From: Paraphysomonas bandaiensis
Taxonomy: Eukaryota; Protista; Chrysophyceae
NCBI GenBank assembly: GCA_965644295.1
Contig: CBFFRP010000008.1
Span: 1 to 44,034, forward strand
Length of the DNA: 44,034 bases
Direction of reading: 5' to 3'
The position numbers and the translations under genes were made by a program. Below, in pieces: positions 1 to 39,388 of this stretch; positions within the stretch are counted from its first letter, which is position 1, and every line of letters starts with the position of its first letter. Below the pieces are notes generated by a model, which searched no databases, was not told the origin of the DNA, and saw only the letters and a list, made by a program, of their open reading frames with translations.

Positions 1-2280
1 GAGAAAGTAGTGAGATGCGCTATACGCGACGTTGTGGACTGGTGTAGGGGGGTGTCGAGTCGTTCCTGTCGACGTCTTGAGGAGGACCCAGCCACGCTGA
101 AGGTACAGCGGGTGTCCCTGCCAGAACTGGAATCGGAGTCGTAGTAGTTTAAGCATGAGTAGGAAGTCTTCGGTGTCCATGTAGTGTTTGGCGGGGAGGG
201 CTCTGGCCTGTGAGTTGGGGGAGCGGAGGGAATTCCTCATGCGGGTGAGTGTACGCCGCAGTGTTTGGATACGTGTGGCAGTGATGCCTGCAGTGAGGCA
301 TAGGGCCAGCAAGCGTTGCACCAGTGACAATAATGCGGTGGTATCCTCCTCGCTGGAAAGGTGCACAGGGTTGTATTTTCCTATTGCAGTTGACCTCAGA
401 ATTTGATGAGCTGCTGCCACCGAGCAGAAGCCACGTCCGGGGGTGGCGGCGTAATCCGTATCGCAGTTGAACGAGGTGACGTGTATGTAGTTGGAACTGT
501 TGTTGACAGTATTGAAGAGTGTGGGCCAGGCTGTTGGGTCCGGAGAGGTCATGATGGTGGTGTGGAGTTGGTGTAGGAGATCCTCTCGCAGGGACGCTGC
601 TATTTGGCCGGTGTTGTCGTAGGCAGCCCAGGTGTTGGTGAGTAAATTGGTGAAGGGGACTGTGCTGTCCTGTTGTGGGGGCTTAGCCTCCAGCTGGTTA
701 ACTTTGGCAGTCGTGGGGGAAGTGGGGCCAGTCGTGGTGGACAGAGGAGTGAAGGTATCTGTGGTGCCAGACCTGTTCGGTTTCAAGAGCTGGGGTGTGG
801 GAGTGATACAGTGAGTTGAGGACAGAGTCGCTGAGCCGTGATTTTTGTGGGAGGTTTTGTCGCGTGCATGGGCTGTTACTGTGAGAGGTGGGTGGGAGAC
901 TGTGGATGGGTGGTGACCTGGTGGAGCGACTATAGTAGTGTGCGATGTTTCGGAGTGAGTGTGGTCTGTACCGCAGGTATTATGTTGTTCGGTGGTGTGT
1001 GATTGTTGACGGGTGGGTATGGGGGGGAAGAAGTCGAAGAGGGTGGTTAGGGATGGTGCGGTCTGGTGGGAGGCATGGACACGTCGGCGTCGATGGGAGG
1101 GGGGCCTCCGTGCGGGGCCATCTCCGCTATCGTCAGAGGTATACCCTGGGCCCTGCTGGTGTGCCGAGGGGTGCTCTGTGCGCTGTGTGTTTGTATCATG
1201 TGGACCCCGGGAATGCTGTGCGTAGGTTCTGTGCGTCGAGCACCATGTGTAGTCACGACTAAATGGCTCATGTAGCATGGAACACAACAGCAGCTTCAAG
1301 GTGATACAGGGGGAGTGTTTTGGGTGTAGAGGTGGAGACAAAGGTGATAGTGTTTCGTAGGTTCTCCGGGGTGAGTGCGAAGTGTAGGCGAGACTACATA
1401 GCTCGGACCCCAGGGAACACAACAATGAGAGTGGGAGTGTAGCCTGGGGATGTATGTATTGGGATATAGGGGAAGGACGGTTATGTCTCCTGGGGAGTTG
1501 TCCCGCGTTATCTGGAGCTGCCATGGGAGTGGGAGCGTCGGCTTGGTGGGTATTACCTGGGGTTGTGGGTTGTCGAGATACCTTATTAGGGGGTTTACGT
1601 GGTCGACGCTTGGGCGGACCGTCGCTGCTGTCGTCGCTGCTGTAACCAGGTCCAACCTGGCGTGGTCTGAGTTGGTGTTTTTTCGCACCTCTTTGCGTCG
1701 GAGGATTGTCGTGTGAAAGCTTGTGAGTACTATGGACTGTGAACAGGCATACCTGGTGCATGCACAGCATTTCCACAGTCCGCTCTGTGCATCCTGTGAG
1801 AGCGTGAGTTGGAGGATGTGGGTGGTGGTGTGCTGTTGGACGGGCACAGGAGGGGAGGTGGATGTGGGTGTTTTGATGCAGGTGAGCAGTACCATGGGCT
1901 GTGAACAGGCACACCTGGTGCATACACAGCATTTCCACAGTCTGCTCTGTGCATCCTGTGAGAGCGTGAGTTGGAGGATGTAGGTGGTGGTGTGCTGTTG
2001 GACGGGCACGGGAGGGGAGGTGGATGTGGGTGTTTTGATGCAGGTGAACAGTACCATGGGCTGTGAACATGCACACCTGGTACATGCACAGCGTTTCTAC
2101 AGTGTCCGCTCTGTGCATCGCGTGAGAGCGCGAGTTGGCGTGTGCTGGTGGTGTTGTGCTAGTGCACGGACACAGGAGGGGAGGTGGATGTGGGTGTTTT
2201 GATGCAGGTGAGCAGTACCATGGGCTGTGAACAGGCACGCGAGGTGCATGCACAGCATCTCCACAGTCCGCTCTGGGCAT
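1..2280 (-). CDS. Partial TE polyprotein with OTU-like cysteine protease domain (not in ORF track)
   Basis: Manual translation: no stop from 2298 to position 1 (ATG at 2280). Motifs TPGRGFCSVAAAHQIL (Cys loop, ~444-397), KHYMDTEDFLLMLKLLRLRFQFW (~189-121) and VHNVAYSASHYFL (His loop, 39-1). Confidence 0.65.
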   Translation of the reverse strand, partial: MPRADCGDAVHAPRVPVHSPWYCSPASKHPHPPPLLCPCTSTTPPAHANSRSHAMHRADTVETLCMYQVCMFTAHGTVHLHQNTHIHLPSRARPTAHHHLHPPTHALTGCTEQTVEMLCMHQVCLFTAHGTAHLHQNTHIHLPSCARPTAHHHPHPPTHALTGCTERTVEMLCMHQVCLFTVHSTHKLSHDNPPTQRGAKKHQLRPRQVGPGYSSDDSSDGPPKRRPRKPPNKVSRQPTTPGNTHQADAPTPMAAPDNAGQLPRRHNRPSPISQYIHPQATLPLSLLCSLGSELCSLAYTSHSPRRTYETLSPLSPPLHPKHSPCITLKLLLCSMLHEPFSRDYTWCSTHRTYAQHSRGPHDTNTQRTEHPSAHQQGPGYTSDDSGDGPARRPPSHRRRRVHASHQTAPSLTTLFDFFPPIPTRQQSHTTEQHNTCGTDHTHSETSHTTIVAPPGHHPSTVSHPPLTVTAHARDKTSHKNHGSATLSSTHCITPTPQLLKPNRSGTTDTFTPLSTTTGPTSPTTAKVNQLEAKPPQQDSTVPFTNLLTNTWAAYDNTGQIAASLREDLLHQLHTTIMTSPDPTAWPTLFNTVNNSSNYIHVTSFNCDTDYAATPGRGFCSVAAAHQILRSTAIGKYNPVHLSSEEDTTALLSLVQRLLALCLTAGITATRIQTLRRTLTRMRNSLRSPNSQARALPAKHYMDTEDFLLMLKLLRLRFQFWQGHPLYLQRGWVLLKTSTGTTRHPPTPVHNVAYSASHYFL

Positions 2281-2288
2281 CTCGTGAG
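1723..2288. repeat. Coding tandem repeat, 162-bp unit, ~3.4 copies
   Basis: Anchor GTGAAC at 1739, 1901, 2063, 2227 (periods 162,162,164). The 2-bp insertion near 2102 shifts the reading frame. Confidence 0.95.
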
Positions 2289-5200
2289 CTGTATTATCTC
2301 ATATGGTCTTTGCGTCGAGCACAATGTGTATACATGGCTACATGGCTCATATGGCGTTGAACACAACAGCGGGTTCGAAATGGGACGGTGTGTGTGTGTT
2401 GAGTGGAATAGAGTGGGCGGAGGTAACGGTGAAACGGGGGTTCTCTGCGGTCGGCACCATGTGTAGACTAGACTGTATCGCGACGAAAATAAGGCACGGA
2501 CATGTCGATATGGCTCATGGAAGATAAGGAGTTGTGTGTGTTTGTTGTTAATGTATGGGGTGTGATGTAAGGAGGTAATAGTGGCATAGTGTAGGAGGGA
2601 GTAGATGCAGTGGGGGTGGAGTGTGTCGGTGTGGAACCAGGATGGCGTATACCTGGTATACATCAGAATACTGGAGTGGTAAGGAAGAGCGTATAAGGGC
2701 TGTAGTACTCTTCATGTGTAGAGGCTGGAGGCGGTGGATTGTGTGTACTCTGCACAATATACAGTGTAATATACGGTGTATTCCAGTGGTGTAGGTTGCG
2801 TGTATATGACTGAGTATCGGTGGTGTGTGTGATGATGTTGGAGTGGGTGTGATGGAGGAGTGTAAAGTATGAAAACACCGTAGACGAGGTTTGTGATGAA
2901 GCTCTGGTACCCTTAATATTCCACAGGGCGTGTTCGGTGCAAGTAGGTGCCTCCAGGGTGGTTTTGGGTGAAGTGGGGTAGGCCAGTAAGCTTGGAGCAG
3001 CGTTTCCAGCTGTTGCAATGGGCTGATGGGGGCGAAATTGGCTGTTGAGTAAACCCGCAGAATGGGGACCCTGTCGGATATGCAGACTGCGAGGATGGCA
3101 CTGGGGGAGGCCATGCTGTGGGGCAGAGCAACACTGCCAGGGCTGCATCCCTGCACTGGAGTGTGTGTAGGCTCTATTTGTAGTTTGTTATTGGGTGTTT
3201 GTTGGGCGTCCATCCAAAGACCTGAATATGTAGGTGTTTGGTAGTTGTGGTGCATGGGACAATTTGTAGTTGTAGTGAGGTCACCGTGAGGTGGATGTGG
3301 TCATGTTGACCGAGGTAGAGCTTGTAATAAGCAGTTTTCTTAAATGGTGCCTGTAGCTTCCTAGAGCTAGGAAAAAGTATATATAAATCTAGCAAATGAC
3401 AATGAATGATAAAAGGGAAACGGAATATAATATTAAAATTGATTATATTGAGTGAGTTGAACTTTCAGTAGGTTTTAACCATCTAATATTTCAAATACTG
3501 CTACTATCTCTTCACTACACACGTACTGTAGGTTTGTTAAAATAATTTAGCTTTACAGCAAATAAGTACTGCTAGAGTCTTGTTGCATAGATGTTTCGTG
3601 TAGTATATATTACTACTTAATGATCTATTAGGGATAGAAAATTTCAGTAAAACTTATGATTTATAGTAGCGTCATAGATTGACCTGTGAAATAGGTGTGA
3701 CTTACATCCGAATAACCTCTAACAGAGCTATAATTGTCAATTTATTGATGCAGGTTGTAGTCAATTATAATTGCGATTGAACAAAATAATACACACGACG
3801 ATATCGACTGTTTCCTTGCGTTTATCAGGGACGCGTACACAGCGTGTCAGGCTAACGCACGACCCTTGCCAGATGAGTCTATATATTGAAGATTCTAAAA
3901 CCTCTACCCGAAGTGATTTTGCTCTGGCTCCTGCTATACGGATCACGGGAACTTCTTCTCATGAAAGTTGTTGATAATACATATGAAGGAGAAGTACACA
4001 GCAGAGATTCCCAGCAGTTGCTAGAGAATGGCTCGAGTGGGCAGAATTGTATCTTCAAAGTGGAACATGTGTACGGCAAGGAAGAAGCCCAATGTTGACA
4101 TAAGTGCATAAAATAGGCGAGATACAAGGAGGAGGAAGGAGGGGTGGGATTGGGACTGTCAATATAGTAACCTATGAATCAGACAATAAGTCGGGGTAAT
4201 ACCAAAACCTGGTATGCAGTCAGTAGTGTTGTCTATACACTGTATATATCATTATGCATCGTTTATTTTTCTATATAATAATATATAACGATGACAAGAG
4301 GTGAAGTGACAACATCTCTCATCATTCATTGGTATCCGCTACATTTATATTCTCTTTTTACTACCAATCAATTTTATTAGACCTTAGATATTATAGACAA
4401 CATGATCTTACACATTACACACAGTCAAAGTATTTCAGTTCCTCTATAACATATTTCATAACATACATATCATTGGTAACATATAATAAACCTATGATCA
4501 ATATTTGTCAATCGCCATATTCATGTTGTCTCAAATAGCAGTCATTTCTATACAATCTTAGTTACCACGATCTTATACGGTCAATATATTTCAGTTTCAC
4601 TACTATGACTGCTATCATGACATTAGTTCTCATTTCTCATAAAATACAGTTAACCTCTTCTTTATTCTTCCATTAACAGTCACACTTCAAATACCTTCGA
4701 ACTACAGCTTTTAATTGCTCTCAAACAGCAAAACTCAACAGCTTTTAATAGCTTACTCAACATTCAACATTACCATCAATCACACGCTGCCCTGTTTGAA
4801 CCTTTAACTAACTACATGTAGTTTGTACCGCTTATGATATGTATTGTAACTATTAATATATACACTCCAGATATACCTTGCCAGTATCAAATAGATGGTA
4901 GTACAAAATATTATTCGCAATCAATTAATCGTGATTGCAATTATTATTTGCTGTTCCAATTAATTCTAAATCAATTAATTGTTGCGCTGCAGCCCAGATT
5001 TCGAAATTTATCGACTAATATATCGCATGACATTTTGACCAATTATCGACTTCGTAAATTCCAATACTCTGTATTCTGTATATTAAAATCAAAACTGCCT
5101 GTAGGGCACGAAAATTTTTCAGCATCTAGGAAATATATAAATGCATACAAAAAAAACACGCACCTTCATTTAACAAATCCAATTTTAAAATTTCATATGA

Positions 5201-10971: not shown

Positions 10972-11704
10972 ACCTCAACAAAGTCGGATTCGCACCTTTT
11001 CGTGGGGATAAATACCGGAGATATTTCTTCGGGAAAGTGACGTGACCAGCAGATATCATATATCATATATAGTCAGCAGATATTGTTCAGACACTCATAT
11101 CAAATGCTTGTGTTGTACAAGGGACACTAATAAGTGTTGTAAAATGCTCATTCTGTTGGAATACGTATGGTTCTCTAAGATAGTACTGTAGAATACGTTA
11201 AATACAATGTGAAAAACAGTAAAACGTAGTCAATAGTCAAAGGTGCTATTATATAGCTATAACTGTGAAATTGAAGTATTATATCATGACGATTCAAGAT
11301 ACGGAAGTTGAGCAGTGGTTGACATGAACGAAATAATTTATCATGTTGTTGACATGTGTTACATGACTACACACACAATTGTGTATACTATTATGATAAA
11401 GTAATCTATCTAGTTTGACTAACTTAAACTTCTCTTAAAACGAGATCATTGTCTGAAAATGGTCAATACTCAGTACATTCTTGAACTAGATCTCAGAGAG
11501 AATTTGGAAAGTATCAGACTCTGCATGCTCACTGGGTTAGCTTTGAGTGATAGAGTGCAAGTTGTTGCACCTTGGTGCGTGCGGTGACACACCCGTAGCT
11601 TTCGTAGCGCCAAATAGTAGGATATCAGAGTTAAGTACTAGTTAGTTTAATTGCAAAGCTAAATTAGGTCTGATTCCGATTGCTAATAATCAGATTTTCA
11701 CAAC
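10972..11704 (+). mobile_element. SINE-like retroposon copy A (5' part 10972-11140, 3' part ~11520-11704, interrupted by unrelated AT-rich DNA)
   Basis: Both parts are reverse-complement matches to copy B (12178-12576) and direct matches to copy E (37949-38432). Confidence 0.85.
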
Positions 11705-12177: not shown

Positions 12178-12576
12178 GTAGTAGTGAATGTCCGATTATT
12201 AGCAATCGGCGTGTAAGAGCAGAACAAATGTAGTACTTAACTATGATATCCTACTACTTGGCGCTACGAAAGCTACTGGTGTGTCACCGCAAGCACCAAT
12301 GTGCAACCAGGTTTGCTCTCTGTCAAGATGAACAGCCCGGATTCTTGACTTTAGTAGGCAGCCCAATACTCCGGATGGCCTTGAGGTCTACACAAGTGAC
12401 ACTTATTAGTGTCCCTTGTACAACACAAGCATTTGGCTATGAGTGGTCTGAACAATATCTGCTGACTATATATCTATATATGATATCTGCGGGTCACGTC
12501 ACTTTCTCGGAGAAATATCTCCGGTACTTATCCCCCATAACACCACGAAAAGGAGCGAATCCGACTTCATTGAGGG
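12178..12576 (-). mobile_element. SINE-like retroposon copy B with 12-bp TSD
   Basis: Starts CCCTCAA on minus strand and ends in a CACTACTAC tail. Flanked by cattagcatgta (12166-12177) and cattagcgtgta (12577-12588). Confidence 0.9.
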
Positions 12577-29340: not shown

Positions 29341-30190
29341 TCAAAAAATTGGACTTGCACTATTTCATTGTGTTCTGGGGGTAAGTAGTGGAGATATAGT
29401 CAGCGGATATTGTTATGTTTACTCATATCCAAATGCTTCGTCTTTAGGCCTCTTGACGAAGAACAAACAGGTATCCGAGAATGGGCCCACCTCAAGGGCA
29501 TGCCTGCCGCAATCAAGCATCCTGACGAATAATCAATAGGTGTGTAAAAGTCAGAACAATTTTAATAACTAGTGCTGATAACTCTGATATCTTACTATTT
29601 GTGCGTCACTGCAAGCACCAAGATTCAATCATTTTCGCCCTCCTTTACCGAATATTCGACTTTAGGAGGTAGCCCATCACTTCGGATGCGCTTGGGGTTG
29701 CGCATTCCCGGATGCCTGTTTGTTCGTAAAAGCCCAAATATATTAGTGTCCCATCATGTACCACACAAGCATTTGGCTATGCGTGGGCATAACAATATCT
29801 GCTGACTATATAATATGCAGTCGAGTTAGATTTCCCGGAAAAATGTCTCCGGTACTTACCCCCCAGAACACCACGAAAAGGTGCGAGTCCTACTTTGTTG
29901 GGGGCGAGTCCTACTTTGTTCCGGAATGGGACCACCTGAAGGACATCCAGGATACTGGGTTGATCACGTTAAGGAGGACTTAAAATCCTGAAATCAGCAG
30001 ATGTCAGGTGCATATCAATATTCTGCTTGCTCACTGCGTTTGCTTTGAGTGATAGAGCAAAGTGACTGCACCTTGGTTCATGTGGTGTTGCACAAGCAGC
30101 TTTCGTGTAGCGTTAAATAGTAGGATATCTGGCTTTAAAATAAGCACTAGTCATTTAAATTAGTTTTGCTAATAATCAGACATTCACTAC
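29341..30190 (+). mobile_element. SINE-like retroposon copy C (split: ~29341-29522 and ~29921-30190)
   Basis: Matches copy E in two pieces and ends CATTCACTAC. Flanked by tagatgtcattt (29329-29340) and tagatatcattt (30191-30202). Confidence 0.85.
29523..29904 (-). mobile_element. SINE-like retroposon copy D nested antisense inside copy C
   Basis: Collinear with copy B (e.g. cacaagcatttggctatg, aacaatatctgctgactata, caccacgaaaagg). Followed by a short duplication gcgagtcctactttgtt (29904-29920). Confidence 0.85.
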
Positions 30191-30690: not shown

Positions 30691-32129
30691 TATTTCGCTT
30701 TGGATAAATCGCTGGACATCAACAACATAATTCCATATACCATACACCTCCTATCATGCAGCGAACTCCAGTTTTCAACTATCTCTTGCGAGCACTATTA
30801 ACTAACTGCCCTTATACCTTATATTATCTCACAATTATGATAAGTAAATTTAAAGTGACTATGCGCAGTGCACATACATCCAAGTTCTTCTATGCTAACA
30901 GATAATTGGTTTGTACGTTTGTATTTTGTATGAATGATCAGTAGCTACTACTATACGGCTTAAGATGCTATCTATATGATTAATCGAGCTATATAGACCA
31001 ATAATTATCATATTTTAAGCCAATTAATTGAAAACCAATGAGTTGTACGCAAGCCTACTACTAAGTATCATTGTTAGATATTGTTTTGCAATGTTTCTAA
31101 TTAACATTAATACACAAGATCTCTTTGGGGGGTATAAGGCTTGCCCCCCCTCCTAGTTTATCAATAGCATAAAATAAAACAATAATCAATATTCGTAAGC
31201 ACTAGGTTCTACACATTTGTCAATTGCACTAGAAACTCAACTAAGGTTGATAGTAATAATGCAACTACAGAGGCTTCATAGAGAACGTTGTTTCCTGTCA
31301 TTTCATGGGAAATCTCAAATGTCTCCCATCATGTTAAGATCTCAAATATAGCAGATAAAAGGACTATTAATAGAATGATTGTAGTCAGAGTGGTATGACA
31401 TGTTGTACTCCTGGGACATCGCAATGACAACAATGCGCTACTATTACTTCCACCATTAAAATATCTTCTATCATAAGCAAAACTTCGTGCATTCTGTGCA
31501 ATCAGGTGACTCCTATTGCGTGTGAGTGTGGCGAACAATAATATAGTACTCTTTTACTCTAAACGAAGACCTGCATATGATAAGTAGGAGGCCCGCTTGT
31601 AATATTGAGGAAAGGGCTCATGCCAATCCCTCAGACAAATGTTCCTTCAATATTCGAGGAAAGCGAGGGAGGGCGTGTATCTTATGCATGCTACTAATAG
31701 CCCGTGTATTCCATGCGAGTGTCCGCTCTGCAGGTGTATATGTGGATAAGGGTAGACGGGTCTACTCACATCACACACACGTCACATACAGACTGTACAC
31801 TTCAATACGCCATACATAGTGTACACAGTATTCTATGTATATGCCGGTGTATTCCTCATCTCTTTTCAGAAAAAATATTTTGGGTAAATTCAAACCCTTA
31901 TAAATAGCAACGATGCACTAGACGATCATGCTCTTCTCGGCCTTTTGGCTAAGATCAAGTGTAGTATCTGTTCTTATCAGTGTAATAACTGATAACCGCA
32001 CAATGTGCGGTACGTTATTCACTAATATTTGAAGCTTGCAGATCACGATGAGCTTGCTCACGTCCTGCACGTTGTCCTCGGCATTGCACCACCGCCTTGT
32101 GATGACAGCCCTTAGGGGCACCCACCTCA

Positions 32130-37847: not shown

Positions 37848-37948
37848 TATATTTAACCGTTCCAATTATGGTACTTAGTCAGCAGGGGTCGTGCTTGGGT
37901 AGCACATTGGTGGCGCATGATGATGGAGGTGGTGTTCTTCTTGGGGGT

Positions 37949-38036
37949 CCCTCAACAAAGTCGGGCTCGCACCTTTTCGTGGTGTTCTGGGGGATAGAAA
38001 CCAGAGAGATTCTCTCTGGGAGACTAACGTGACCCG
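37949..38036 (+). ncRNA. Putative HDV-like self-cleaving ribozyme at the element 5' end
   Basis: P1 37949-56/37984-93 (imperfect); P2 CGGGCTCGC 37962-70 / GTGACCCG 38029-36; P3 ACC/GGT with 7-nt L3 TTTTCGT; P4 CCAGAGAG/CTCTCTGG; J4/2 GAGACTAAC with candidate catalytic C at 38024. Confidence 0.72.
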
Positions 38037-38432
38037 CAAACATAGTCAGCAGATATTCTTCTGCCCACTCATAGCCAAATGCTTGTGAAGACGTCTTTGA
38101 GCCCTGACGAATAAACAGGCATCCGGAAATATGGGCCCACCTCAAGGGCATCCGGGACAGGGCCCACCTGAAGGGTAGCCGGGGTATTGGGCTGCCTGCT
38201 GAAGTCAAGCATCCGGGATGTTCACCTTCAGAACTCAGAGCGGAAGTAGTCGCACCTTGGTGTTTGCGGGCGCGCACAAGCAGCTTTAGTAGCGTTAAAT
38301 AGTAGGATAAAAAAAGTGTGTACTGATTAGTTACCGGTAGAGGTCTCACTAGGTTGACTAGCATACATCTACTAGCTACTAAATCGGTGCAGGCTTTTAA
38401 CGCCTGTTGCTAATAATAAGACTTTCAATATA
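37949..38432 (+). mobile_element. SINE-like retroposon copy E (most intact) with 12-bp TSD
   Basis: Starts CCCTCAAC. Flanked by cttcttgggggt (37937-37948) and cttcctgggggt (38433-38444). Internal gggcccacctSaaggg subrepeats. Confidence 0.92.
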
Positions 38433-38660
38433 CTTCCTGGGGGTATAAGATCGATGTGGGTGTGCAGGATAATGGAATGGGTAGAGTCACCGCTTGTAGG
38501 GGCCGGTGGTCGGATGTGTAAAAGTAGTTGGCCGAGCTGAGGCACGCCGAGTAGGTGTACTTCGTGCTTCGTGGAGTTGAGTGGTGGAGACGTTGAGTAG
38601 GGTTAGTATGTGGTCCGTGTGGCTGCGAAGTGGAGTGCGTGGCGGTATCGCGAAGCCTTA
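38433..38660 (-). pseudogene. Relic of LINE apurinic endonuclease (APE) C-terminus, continuing at ~37948-37880 beyond the inserted SINE
   Basis: Minus-strand RSHTDHILT (DHIL 38615-38604) and, after one frameshift, YTSDHRPL (SDHRP 38514-38500). C/A-rich like the element at 1-3400. Confidence 0.65.
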
Positions 38661-39388
38661 CATGTGAATTTATTATTTGATAATGCTGATCCCTGAATAA
38701 AGGGACTAGACACCTACTTAAGCAGGGGAGTCCTGTCCATCATGCAGCTACGATATATACTCAACATTAACATATTATAATATATAAATTAGCAAATATA
38801 GGTGAGACCCTCTATACATCAAACCTAGTGAAATTAATTTCCCAGGTTTGGTCATCAGATGAATTTTATACTATTTACTTGACAATTAATTGAAGCAAGC
38901 TGAAGTCAATTATAATTGAAATTATGGTTTGATGTCCTAATTTTAATAGCCAATTAATTGCATTTAATTGATACGTAGCTCTGCTGTTGACTATTTTGAA
39001 CCCACAGTATATTAGCTCGTAGACAATAGACAACACACTGTTATAATAGACATCAATACAGACTTGAATTCATTAGGACTTATACATTACATATACACTT
39101 CTTTGAAGTGTATATAAAGAAGGTGTTGAAGATAGGTAAGTTATGATAGATCTCTGTACATTGCAATATACAGTATTCTGCATCGACTAAAGAAATCCAA
39201 AAACGTTACAGGAATTTGTTATCTGACTGATGTTGGTCCCTATAGCATTTTCCTGGTTTAGTTGCAAATTTCGTAGCTCTCGGGTTGTTGCCAAATTACA
39301 ATACGTATTGTAATTCATACAGCAGATTTATACTTTATATAATACAGAACGCAGCAGCACTCAACGTACTCCTAAAAATTCTAAAAAT

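Follow-up and report, generated by a model that had tools for sequence, protein, structure and literature searches.

The locus

The DNA analysed here (the window) is a stretch of 44,034 nt. It is eukaryotic, lies within a 62.5-Mb assembly and holds a U2 spliceosomal RNA gene at 31929-32113 on the plus strand (144 bits). Public sequencing runs that contain DNA of the window include marine poly-A metatranscriptomes. The sequence at 37949-38036, which an earlier note had read as an HDV-like ribozyme at the head of a dispersed SINE-like family, is as described there, and it opens a retroposon copy designated copy E. The parts of this copy are listed in Table 1 together with other copies from the window and with a second member of the ribozyme class. 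All four copies named at the outset, A (10973, plus strand), B (12576, minus strand), D (29904, minus strand) and E (37949, plus strand), are genuine. The weaker pattern matches F (8724) and C (14594) are due to chance and are not copies.

Other repeats are also present in the window. At 1-3370 on the minus strand lies the 5' portion of a LINE-like repeat rich in C and A, which contains 162-bp tandem repeats at 1726-2288 and has a 5' boundary that is common to at least 8 genomic copies. It is related to, yet distinct from, the SET-APE LINE of loci L061 and L064 described below. A 48-nt dispersed repeat (TAATTGTCAATT...) is found at 3731-3778 and 38876-38923; it has at least 25 genomic copies with ~94% identity and is unrelated to the retroposon.

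Table 1. Retroposon copies, parts of copy E and a second member of the ribozyme class. Positions refer to the window unless a locus is named; nt numbers count from the first base of the element.
Feature	Position	Strand	Remarks
Copy A	10973-11647	+	degraded; P3'/P1' deletion, large insertion
Copy B	12247-12576	-	degraded; G in place of C76
Copy D	29683-29904	-	degraded; inserted into another copy
Left target-site duplication CTTCTTGGGGGT	37937-37948	+	12 bp; 11 of 12 bases identical to 38433-38444
Copy E	37949-38431	+	483 bp; 85.7% identity to the 510-bp consensus
HDV-like head with theta-type core	37949-38036	+	nt 1-88; fold by homology to the covarying class
P1 5' strand, C1-A6	37949-37954	+	predicted cleavage immediately 5' of 37949
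J1/2	consensus nt 7/9-13		single-stranded
P2 5' strand	37962-37970	+	nt 14-22; pairs with 38029-38036
P3 ACC, L3 UUUUCGU, P3' GGU	37971-37983	+	nt 23-25, 26-32 and 33-35; family-invariant
GUU, three extra bases between P3' and P1'	37984-37986	+	nt G36-U38
P1 3' strand CUGGGGG	37987-37993	+	nt 39-45; 6 of 7 positions pair with nt 1-7
J1/4, AUAGAAA in copy E	37994-38000	+	nt 46-52; family and class consensus AUAAGUA
P4 hairpin CCAGAGAG AUU CUCUCUGG	38001-38019	+	nt 53-71; 8 bp
J4/2, GAGACUAAC in copy E	38020-38028	+	nt 72-80; consensus GAAACUAAC; candidate catalytic C at 38024
P2 3' strand GUGACCCG	38029-38036	+	nt 81-88
Element body	38037-38236	+	with the head makes up the 5' module of ~321 nt
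LINE-derived 3' tail	38237-38431	+	~190 nt; terminus ...AAGACUUUCAAUAU, without poly-A
Right target-site duplication CTTCCTGGGGGT	38433-38444	+	repeats the left duplication CTTCTTGGGGGT
Second class member	G000:C103:7208-7377	-	canonical; 8-bp P2
Second class member, other copy	G000:C357:247763-247931	+	canonical; 8-bp P2

Anatomy and abundance of the retroposon

The element is a non-coding, non-autonomous non-LTR retroposon of ~510 bp. This assignment follows from its LINE-derived 3' tail and its target-site duplications, which are the marks of a SINE or other non-autonomous retroposon, together with the absence of a polymerase III head. Classical SINEs have a head derived from tRNA, 7SL or 5S RNA with an internal polymerase III promoter, and neither ARAGORN nor Rfam found a tRNA, 7SL or 5S part in the element. 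An alignment of the window copies with 60 genomic loci showed that the repeat is sharply bounded and starts with CCCTCAACAAAG. The 5' end of copy E is exactly at 37949, and the flanks diverge precisely at this position in 16 and 13 contigs from sequencing runs X1 and X2, respectively. An exact duplication of 7-17 bp was found in 24 of the 27 other full-length copies, and 18 of these 24 duplications stop at the base preceding C1. The length of the element is 509-512 bp in 26/27 full-length copies. Poly-A is absent from the 3' end, and the consensus terminates in ...AAGACTTTCAATAT. The element body is present in contigs from poly-A metatranscriptomes, where DNA carry-over is possible and the contigs carry no information on RNA ends.

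About 1,000 places in the genome match the 33-nt core of the head with at most 3 mismatches. Heads are equally frequent on both strands (507 forward and 493 reverse), and the reversed core, used as a control, gave 0 matches genome-wide at the same threshold. Copies have also been found inside one another. At 29341-30127 of the window the minus-strand copy D lies within a plus-strand copy (29341-29501 and 29957-30127), and at locus L027 one head is inserted into another head. Four variant ribozyme heads lie on one strand at G000:C69:4989-7108 with an exact spacing of 681 bp, an arrangement that looks like tandem amplification of part of the element.

The head of copy E matches the family model at 104 bits. 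Three bases of its AUAAGUA, which is invariant in the class, and one of GAAACUAAC are substituted, and copies A, B and D are more degraded than E. Copy E is an old, mutated insertion, a fossil that is probably no longer active. The changes in old copies are neutral decay. The G found in place of C76 was considered as an argument against a catalytic C at this position but was dropped, as the G76 variant is confined to copies A and B of the window.

Structure of the head

Nucleotides 1-88 of the element follow the nested double-pseudoknot order P1-P2-P3-L3-P3'-P1'-(P1.1)-P4-J4/2-P2', in which P1 and P2 cross. A 3-bp P3 that closes an L3 of 7-8 nt with the pattern U...CG is present as ACC-UUUUCGU-GGU. 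P1 consists of the pairs C1-G45, C2-G44, C3-G43, U4.G42, C5-G41 and A6-U40, and it can be drawn either as six contiguous pairs (C1-A6 with U40-G45) after a linker or as 8 bp with a C39-U40 bulge. The 2-nt bulge that the earlier note considered necessary is therefore one reading of P1; in the other, the six contiguous pairs are accompanied by a 3-nt insert, G36-U38, that is absent from the relatives described below. The retroposon has 10 nt between P3' and AUAAGUA versus exactly 7 in the relatives, a difference that is unique to the retroposon. HDV-like ribozymes in general have a P1 of 6-7 bp that starts at the cleavage site and a P1' strand that comes straight after P3'. P2 is longer than originally drawn. 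It pairs nt 14-22 with nt 81-88 in a helix of 8 bp with one bulge, the consensus being CGG[A]CUCGC with GUGAGCCG. The earlier note called P1.1 weak; this mini-helix between L3 and the bases that follow P1' amounts to at most one A-U pair, in which A46, the first A of J1/4, can pair with a U of L3, and the next position is U.U.

HDV and R2 have shorter J1/4 and J4/2 segments than the head, where these measure 7 nt and, from P4 to P2', 9 nt; the base at +1 is C, where the usual +1 is G. The candidate catalytic base is C76, at 38024 of the window, and the sequence C76-U-A-A(-C) matches the C-N-R-A pattern for the start of J4/2. Pseudoknot-free folding by free energy recovers P1, P3 and P4 in the consensus and P2, P3 and P4 in copy E. 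An Infernal-type scan had been advised as a check on the fold, and no HDV-type model of Rfam matched the head, either at the gathering threshold or at E<=10. The same models also miss the phage members that lie next to tRNAs and the metagenome relatives. Since the tRNA-adjacent phage relatives are missed too, the failure of Rfam to match the head says little.

Covariation within the family and among relatives

The earlier note claimed covariation between copies of the family. For P4 the claim holds: the variants quoted for copies E, B and D are correct and pairing is kept. There are three active subfamilies, and the differences between their heads are confined to P4. The third pair of this helix (55:69) alternates between G-C, G.U and A-U among the subfamilies, and one of them gains an extra G-C pair. 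This variation supports the P4 hairpin. For P1, P2 and P3 the claim does not hold, as these helices are invariant among the three subfamilies and show no within-family covariation. Copy E carries a matched pair of changes in P2 (A17G and G85C) that is unique to it, and the unmatched combinations G17/G85 and A17/C85 also occur genome-wide. Being confined to a single old copy, the paired change was rejected as compensatory evidence. The three helices are supported by covariation among relatives that do not belong to the family, and not by family copies.

Relatives were sought in public collections with three single-stranded motifs separated by free helices and then with a shorter pattern. The search returned two metagenome contigs (L065 and L066), a contig from a giant-virus bin (L067), the locus pair C103/C357 in the genome of the window and, with the shorter pattern, 29 viral loci, about a dozen of which are distinct true members. 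The shared core consists of L3 UUUUCGU, J1/4 AUAAGUA and J4/2 GAAACUAA[C] and is combined with P1, P2 and P3 that are wholly different in sequence but complementary. It is carried by about 12-14 phage contigs, the giant-virus contig L067, the metagenome contig L065 and the locus pair C103/C357. In every true member the helix sequences differ and complementarity is kept at the same places, and the first pair of P3 is A-U, G-C or U-A. At two loci, L070 and L084, P1 pairs poorly, and these may be degenerate. Four matches to the three-motif pattern in bacterial genomes (L096-L099) are without P3 and were taken as chance.

In an alignment of the phage members alone, 91.9% of the cells are paired versus 54.7% when shuffled and 29-48% when the partner strand is slid. 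Double-sided changes occur in 14 of the 17 pairs (7/7 in P1, 6/7 in P2 and 1/3 in P3). In a partner permutation, the 3' strands of 15 members, including the retroposon, were reassigned among the 5' strands 100,000 times. The native score of P1 is 95/105, compared to 75.7 +/- 2.8 for the permuted sets, and that of P2 is 92/105, compared to 64.4 +/- 3.6; the native score was reached in 0/100,000 permutations. For the retroposon alone, the P2 complementarity of 6/7 beats all 14 swapped partners and the P1 complementarity, also 6/7, is equalled by 2 of the 14. The HDV-like layout is upheld by these results: both crossing helices covary class-wide, and the core matches the theta/HDV-like pattern ACC-U-YY-UCGU-GGU with CUAAC.

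The relatives differ in their surroundings. The C103/C357 member has P1 CAUGCCC/GGGUGUG (7 bp), J1/2 AA, P2 UAAUCACG/UGUGAUUA, P3 GCC/GGC and P4 GCAGCC/GGCUGU. Its two copies share 45 nt upstream, including the palindrome CTATTCAAA...TTTGAATAG, and therefore the ribozyme there is not at the 5' end of a retroposon. The giant-virus member (L067:5577-5676, on an IMG/VR contig) has a long P4 and is intergenic, upstream of a 172-aa ORF. No tRNA lies on this contig, whose products include Mre11/Rad50-like, T5orf172 and Hint-domain proteins. Two non-coding JGI metagenome contigs (L065:1-82 and L066:1-60) have their first base within the ribozyme and miss the predicted +1 by a few bases, an appearance that assembled transcripts beginning at a cleavage site would have.

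The cleavage site and the link to theta ribozymes

Theta ribozymes are minimal HDV-like ribozymes of gut Caudoviricetes (Kienbeck et al. 2024, PMC10879173). Their defining context is the 3' end of a phage tRNA, and self-cleavage has been demonstrated in vitro (PMC10879173). The catalytic C of theta ribozymes is the first position of J4/2, and an elongated J4/2 has been verified experimentally (PMC10879173). CUAA(C) is the commonest J4/2 of the published examples, and entries in the supplement of the same study have P3 ACC, L3 U-CC-UCGU, P3' GGU, P1.1 GG and J4/2 CUAAC (PMC10879173). The searches in that work included protist genomes, and theta and minimal HDV-like matches were almost entirely confined to phages (PMC10879173). 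The earlier note had pointed to a resemblance in sequence to L1Tc. Judged by core sequence, the closest kin of the retroposon head among the ribozymes compared appear to be the phage theta-type ribozymes. The retroposon is not a theta ribozyme in the strict sense of a minimal form next to the 3' end of a phage tRNA; four of the phage relatives do lie beside a tRNA.

These four phage members start one base after the tRNA 3' end (L069 996/997, L083 4594/4595, L086 6896/6897 and L089 5943/5944). The exact adjacency confirms the register independently: the base at +1 is the one that pairs with the final P1' nucleotide ahead of AUAAGUA. This pair (1:37) covaries in the relatives. In the retroposon the corresponding +1 base is C1, which is also the boundary defined by the target-site duplications. 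By homology, the predicted cut site of the retroposon would be 5' of C1, where the duplications end.

A portable 5' module and the partner LINE

A second non-coding element, ~1.2 kb in length (loci L031-L060, e.g. L038:1501-2716), carries the best-conserved heads. Its copies are 97-99% alike and therefore it has been active recently. The target-site duplications of this element abut C1, as they do in the 510-bp element. The two elements share only their first 321 nt (95.6% identity), and the 1.2-kb element has its own 3' part of ~890 nt with the terminus ...AATAATCAGATTTTCAAT. Because these 321 nt are common to two elements with different 3' parts, the head and a further ~230 nt act as a portable 5' module to which different tails have been attached. 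Of the 26 heads with a variant next base, all but one interrupted copy run on into the retroposon body.

The tail of the 510-bp element is shared with a LINE. Consensus nt 319-509 have 87.5% identity to the 3' UTR of a SET-APE-RT LINE (L062 and L063), immediately behind the stop codon of its giant open reading frame with SET, APE-endonuclease and reverse-transcriptase domains. In the sequence covered, which for the partner LINE lies downstream of its 5' end, no LINE with this head was found. Giant LINE frames of 2,800-3,700 codons are found at L061, L062 and L063 (G000:C644, C433 and C440), and in these the SET methyltransferase domain precedes the APE endonuclease and the reverse transcriptase. 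The giant SET-APE LINEs comprise at least two families without nucleotide similarity to each other. L061 and L064 belong to a different LINE family and were rejected as the partner. The ribozyme core is absent from the 5' regions of the relatives L100 and L101. The LINE fragment at 1-3370 on the minus strand of the window was also rejected as the partner; it is of another family, and its 5' boundary near 3370-3384 is without the core.

Proposed mechanism and alternatives

From the sequence comparisons above, the element is likely to be a ribozyme-headed retroposon in which a theta-type HDV-like core takes the place of the polymerase III promoter and cleaves the element's own 5' end from longer transcripts. 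The earlier proposal that a non-autonomous retroposon sets its own 5' end with a ribozyme gains support from the agreement between the predicted cut site and the boundary defined by the duplications. A copy would be transcribed within a longer host or read-through transcript. Nucleotides 1-88 would then form the nested double pseudoknot (P1, P2, P3/L3, the one-pair P1.1 and P4), a fold that homology and covariation establish. C76, the first base of J4/2 CUAAC, would catalyse cleavage 5' of C1 and produce an RNA that starts at C1. The 190-nt tail, which is shared with the 3' UTR of the giant SET-APE-RT LINE, may recruit the reverse transcriptase of this LINE for target-primed reverse transcription. 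Copying up to the cleaved 5' end would give insertions with duplications of 7-17 bp abutting C1, as is seen in the copies.

Why would a retroposon keep such a head if it no longer cleaved? It could be a relic HDV-like ribozyme that the insert of 3 nt and the weakness of P1.1 have made inactive. Its present function would be that of an internal promoter or of a 5' module bound by protein, and the fixed 5' end would come from a transcription start at C1. The insert is unique to the retroposon, and the whole 321-nt module, not just the 88 nt of the head, is conserved between the two elements. In addition, the first 77 nt of L1Tc (Pr77) have been documented as both an internal promoter and a ribozyme (PMC3383444). 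However, all of the class-invariant core bases and the pairing of P1, P2 and P3 are kept in the three active subfamilies and ~1,000 copies, and a relic or promoter does not predict that the last base of P1' pairs with exactly the first base of the element. This explanation is considered unlikely. Less probable still is the reading that the fold is real and cleaves but has a main role other than the definition of the 5' end, such as the priming or templating of the second strand or the translation or stability of the cleaved 5' end, roles that have been discussed for the R2 and RTE ribozymes. The R2 ribozyme and RNA 5'-end structure have been linked to 5'-junction formation and insertion (PMC3774820, PMC11331408). 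A role in translation is unlikely because the element is non-coding, and the other roles would add to the main explanation rather than exclude it.

It is very unlikely, the least probable of the explanations weighed here, that the resemblance is due to chance and that a conserved transposon end can merely be drawn as an HDV-like fold. With z-scores of -0.24 and -0.42 the folding energy of the 92-nt head is unremarkable, and there is no Rfam match, as would be the case for a chance resemblance. However, pseudoknot-free folding energies are unable to score a nested-double-pseudoknot topology, and the exact core is found in unrelated sequences with covarying helices, for which not one of the permutations reached the native score.

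Implications

HDV-like ribozymes at the 5' ends of retrotransposons are known from animals and trypanosomatids, and they are here extended to a marine protist with ~1,000 copies. The core sequence ties a eukaryotic mobile element to the theta ribozymes of phages. It also defines a wider ribozyme subclass (L3 UUUUCGU, J1/4 AUAAGUA and P4 present) that escapes both the current Rfam models and the published theta descriptor. A ribozyme head suggests that a short retroposon could spread without a promoter by riding any transcript. The ~1,000 natural variants of one ribozyme can be used for activity mapping. A more tentative idea, about which there is considerable doubt, is that a eukaryotic retroposon lineage recruited a theta-type ribozyme as a portable '5'-end maker', with a 321-nt module, distinct from the partner LINE's own 5' end, placed on at least two different LINE-derived tails. 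The elements would then form a class of SINEs headed by a ribozyme rather than by a polymerase III promoter. The giant-virus relatives offer a hint that the ribozyme has travelled by way of viruses among phages, giant viruses and marine protists.

Comparison with known systems

The theta ribozymes and the retroposon head have much in common. Theta ribozymes have P3 ACC/GGU or GCC/GGC, L3 U-YY-NCGU and J4/2 CUAA or CUAAC with the catalytic C first; their P1 of 7 bp, J1/2 of 1-3 nt and P2 of 7-8 bp are also like those of the class to which the head belongs. The P3 and J4/2 of the retroposon are identical to published theta entries and its L3 is nearly so. However, L3 has CC in theta ribozymes and UU in the retroposon class, and P1.1 is GG in theta ribozymes whereas the class has only an A, within the invariant AUAAGUA. 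Theta ribozymes have a minimal form without P4 and with a short L4, while the retroposon class has a real P4, which is 8 bp in the retroposon. Theta ribozymes lie beside a phage tRNA; the retroposon head lies in a eukaryotic retroposon with no tRNA nearby and has 3 extra nt before P1'.

In L1Tc/NARTc, ingi/RIME and SIDER the Pr77 ribozyme is HDV-like and makes up the first ~77-96 nt of a LINE and its short derivatives (PMC3185411, PMC4035085). The P1.1 of L1TcRz is one pair (PMC3185411), and L1Tc provides precedents for both a C at +1 and a 1-bp P1.1 (PMC4035085, PMC3185411). The retroposon head likewise has C at +1 and at most one pair in P1.1, and cleavage at the first base of the element, as in Pr77, is predicted for it. 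The short elements of trypanosomatids are deletion derivatives that have the LINE's own 5' end, whereas no head-carrying LINE was found in the sequence covered here.

In R2 (and R2 SIDE), RTE and Baggins of animals, a 5' HDV-like ribozyme releases the RNA of the element from a co-transcript (PMC3774820, PMC3414825). These ribozymes have a P1 of 6-7 bp, comparable to the six-pair reading of the head, tolerate mismatches at its top and, like the head, have a variable P4. R2 is site-specific in rDNA, is coding and has a J1/4 of 0-2 nt, whereas the retroposon is dispersed and non-coding with a J1/4 of 7 nt. Classical SINEs resemble the element in that they are short, non-coding and abundant and have a LINE-derived tail and target-site duplications. 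Their head is a polymerase III promoter from tRNA, 7SL or 5S RNA, and here the ribozyme occupies the position of that head.
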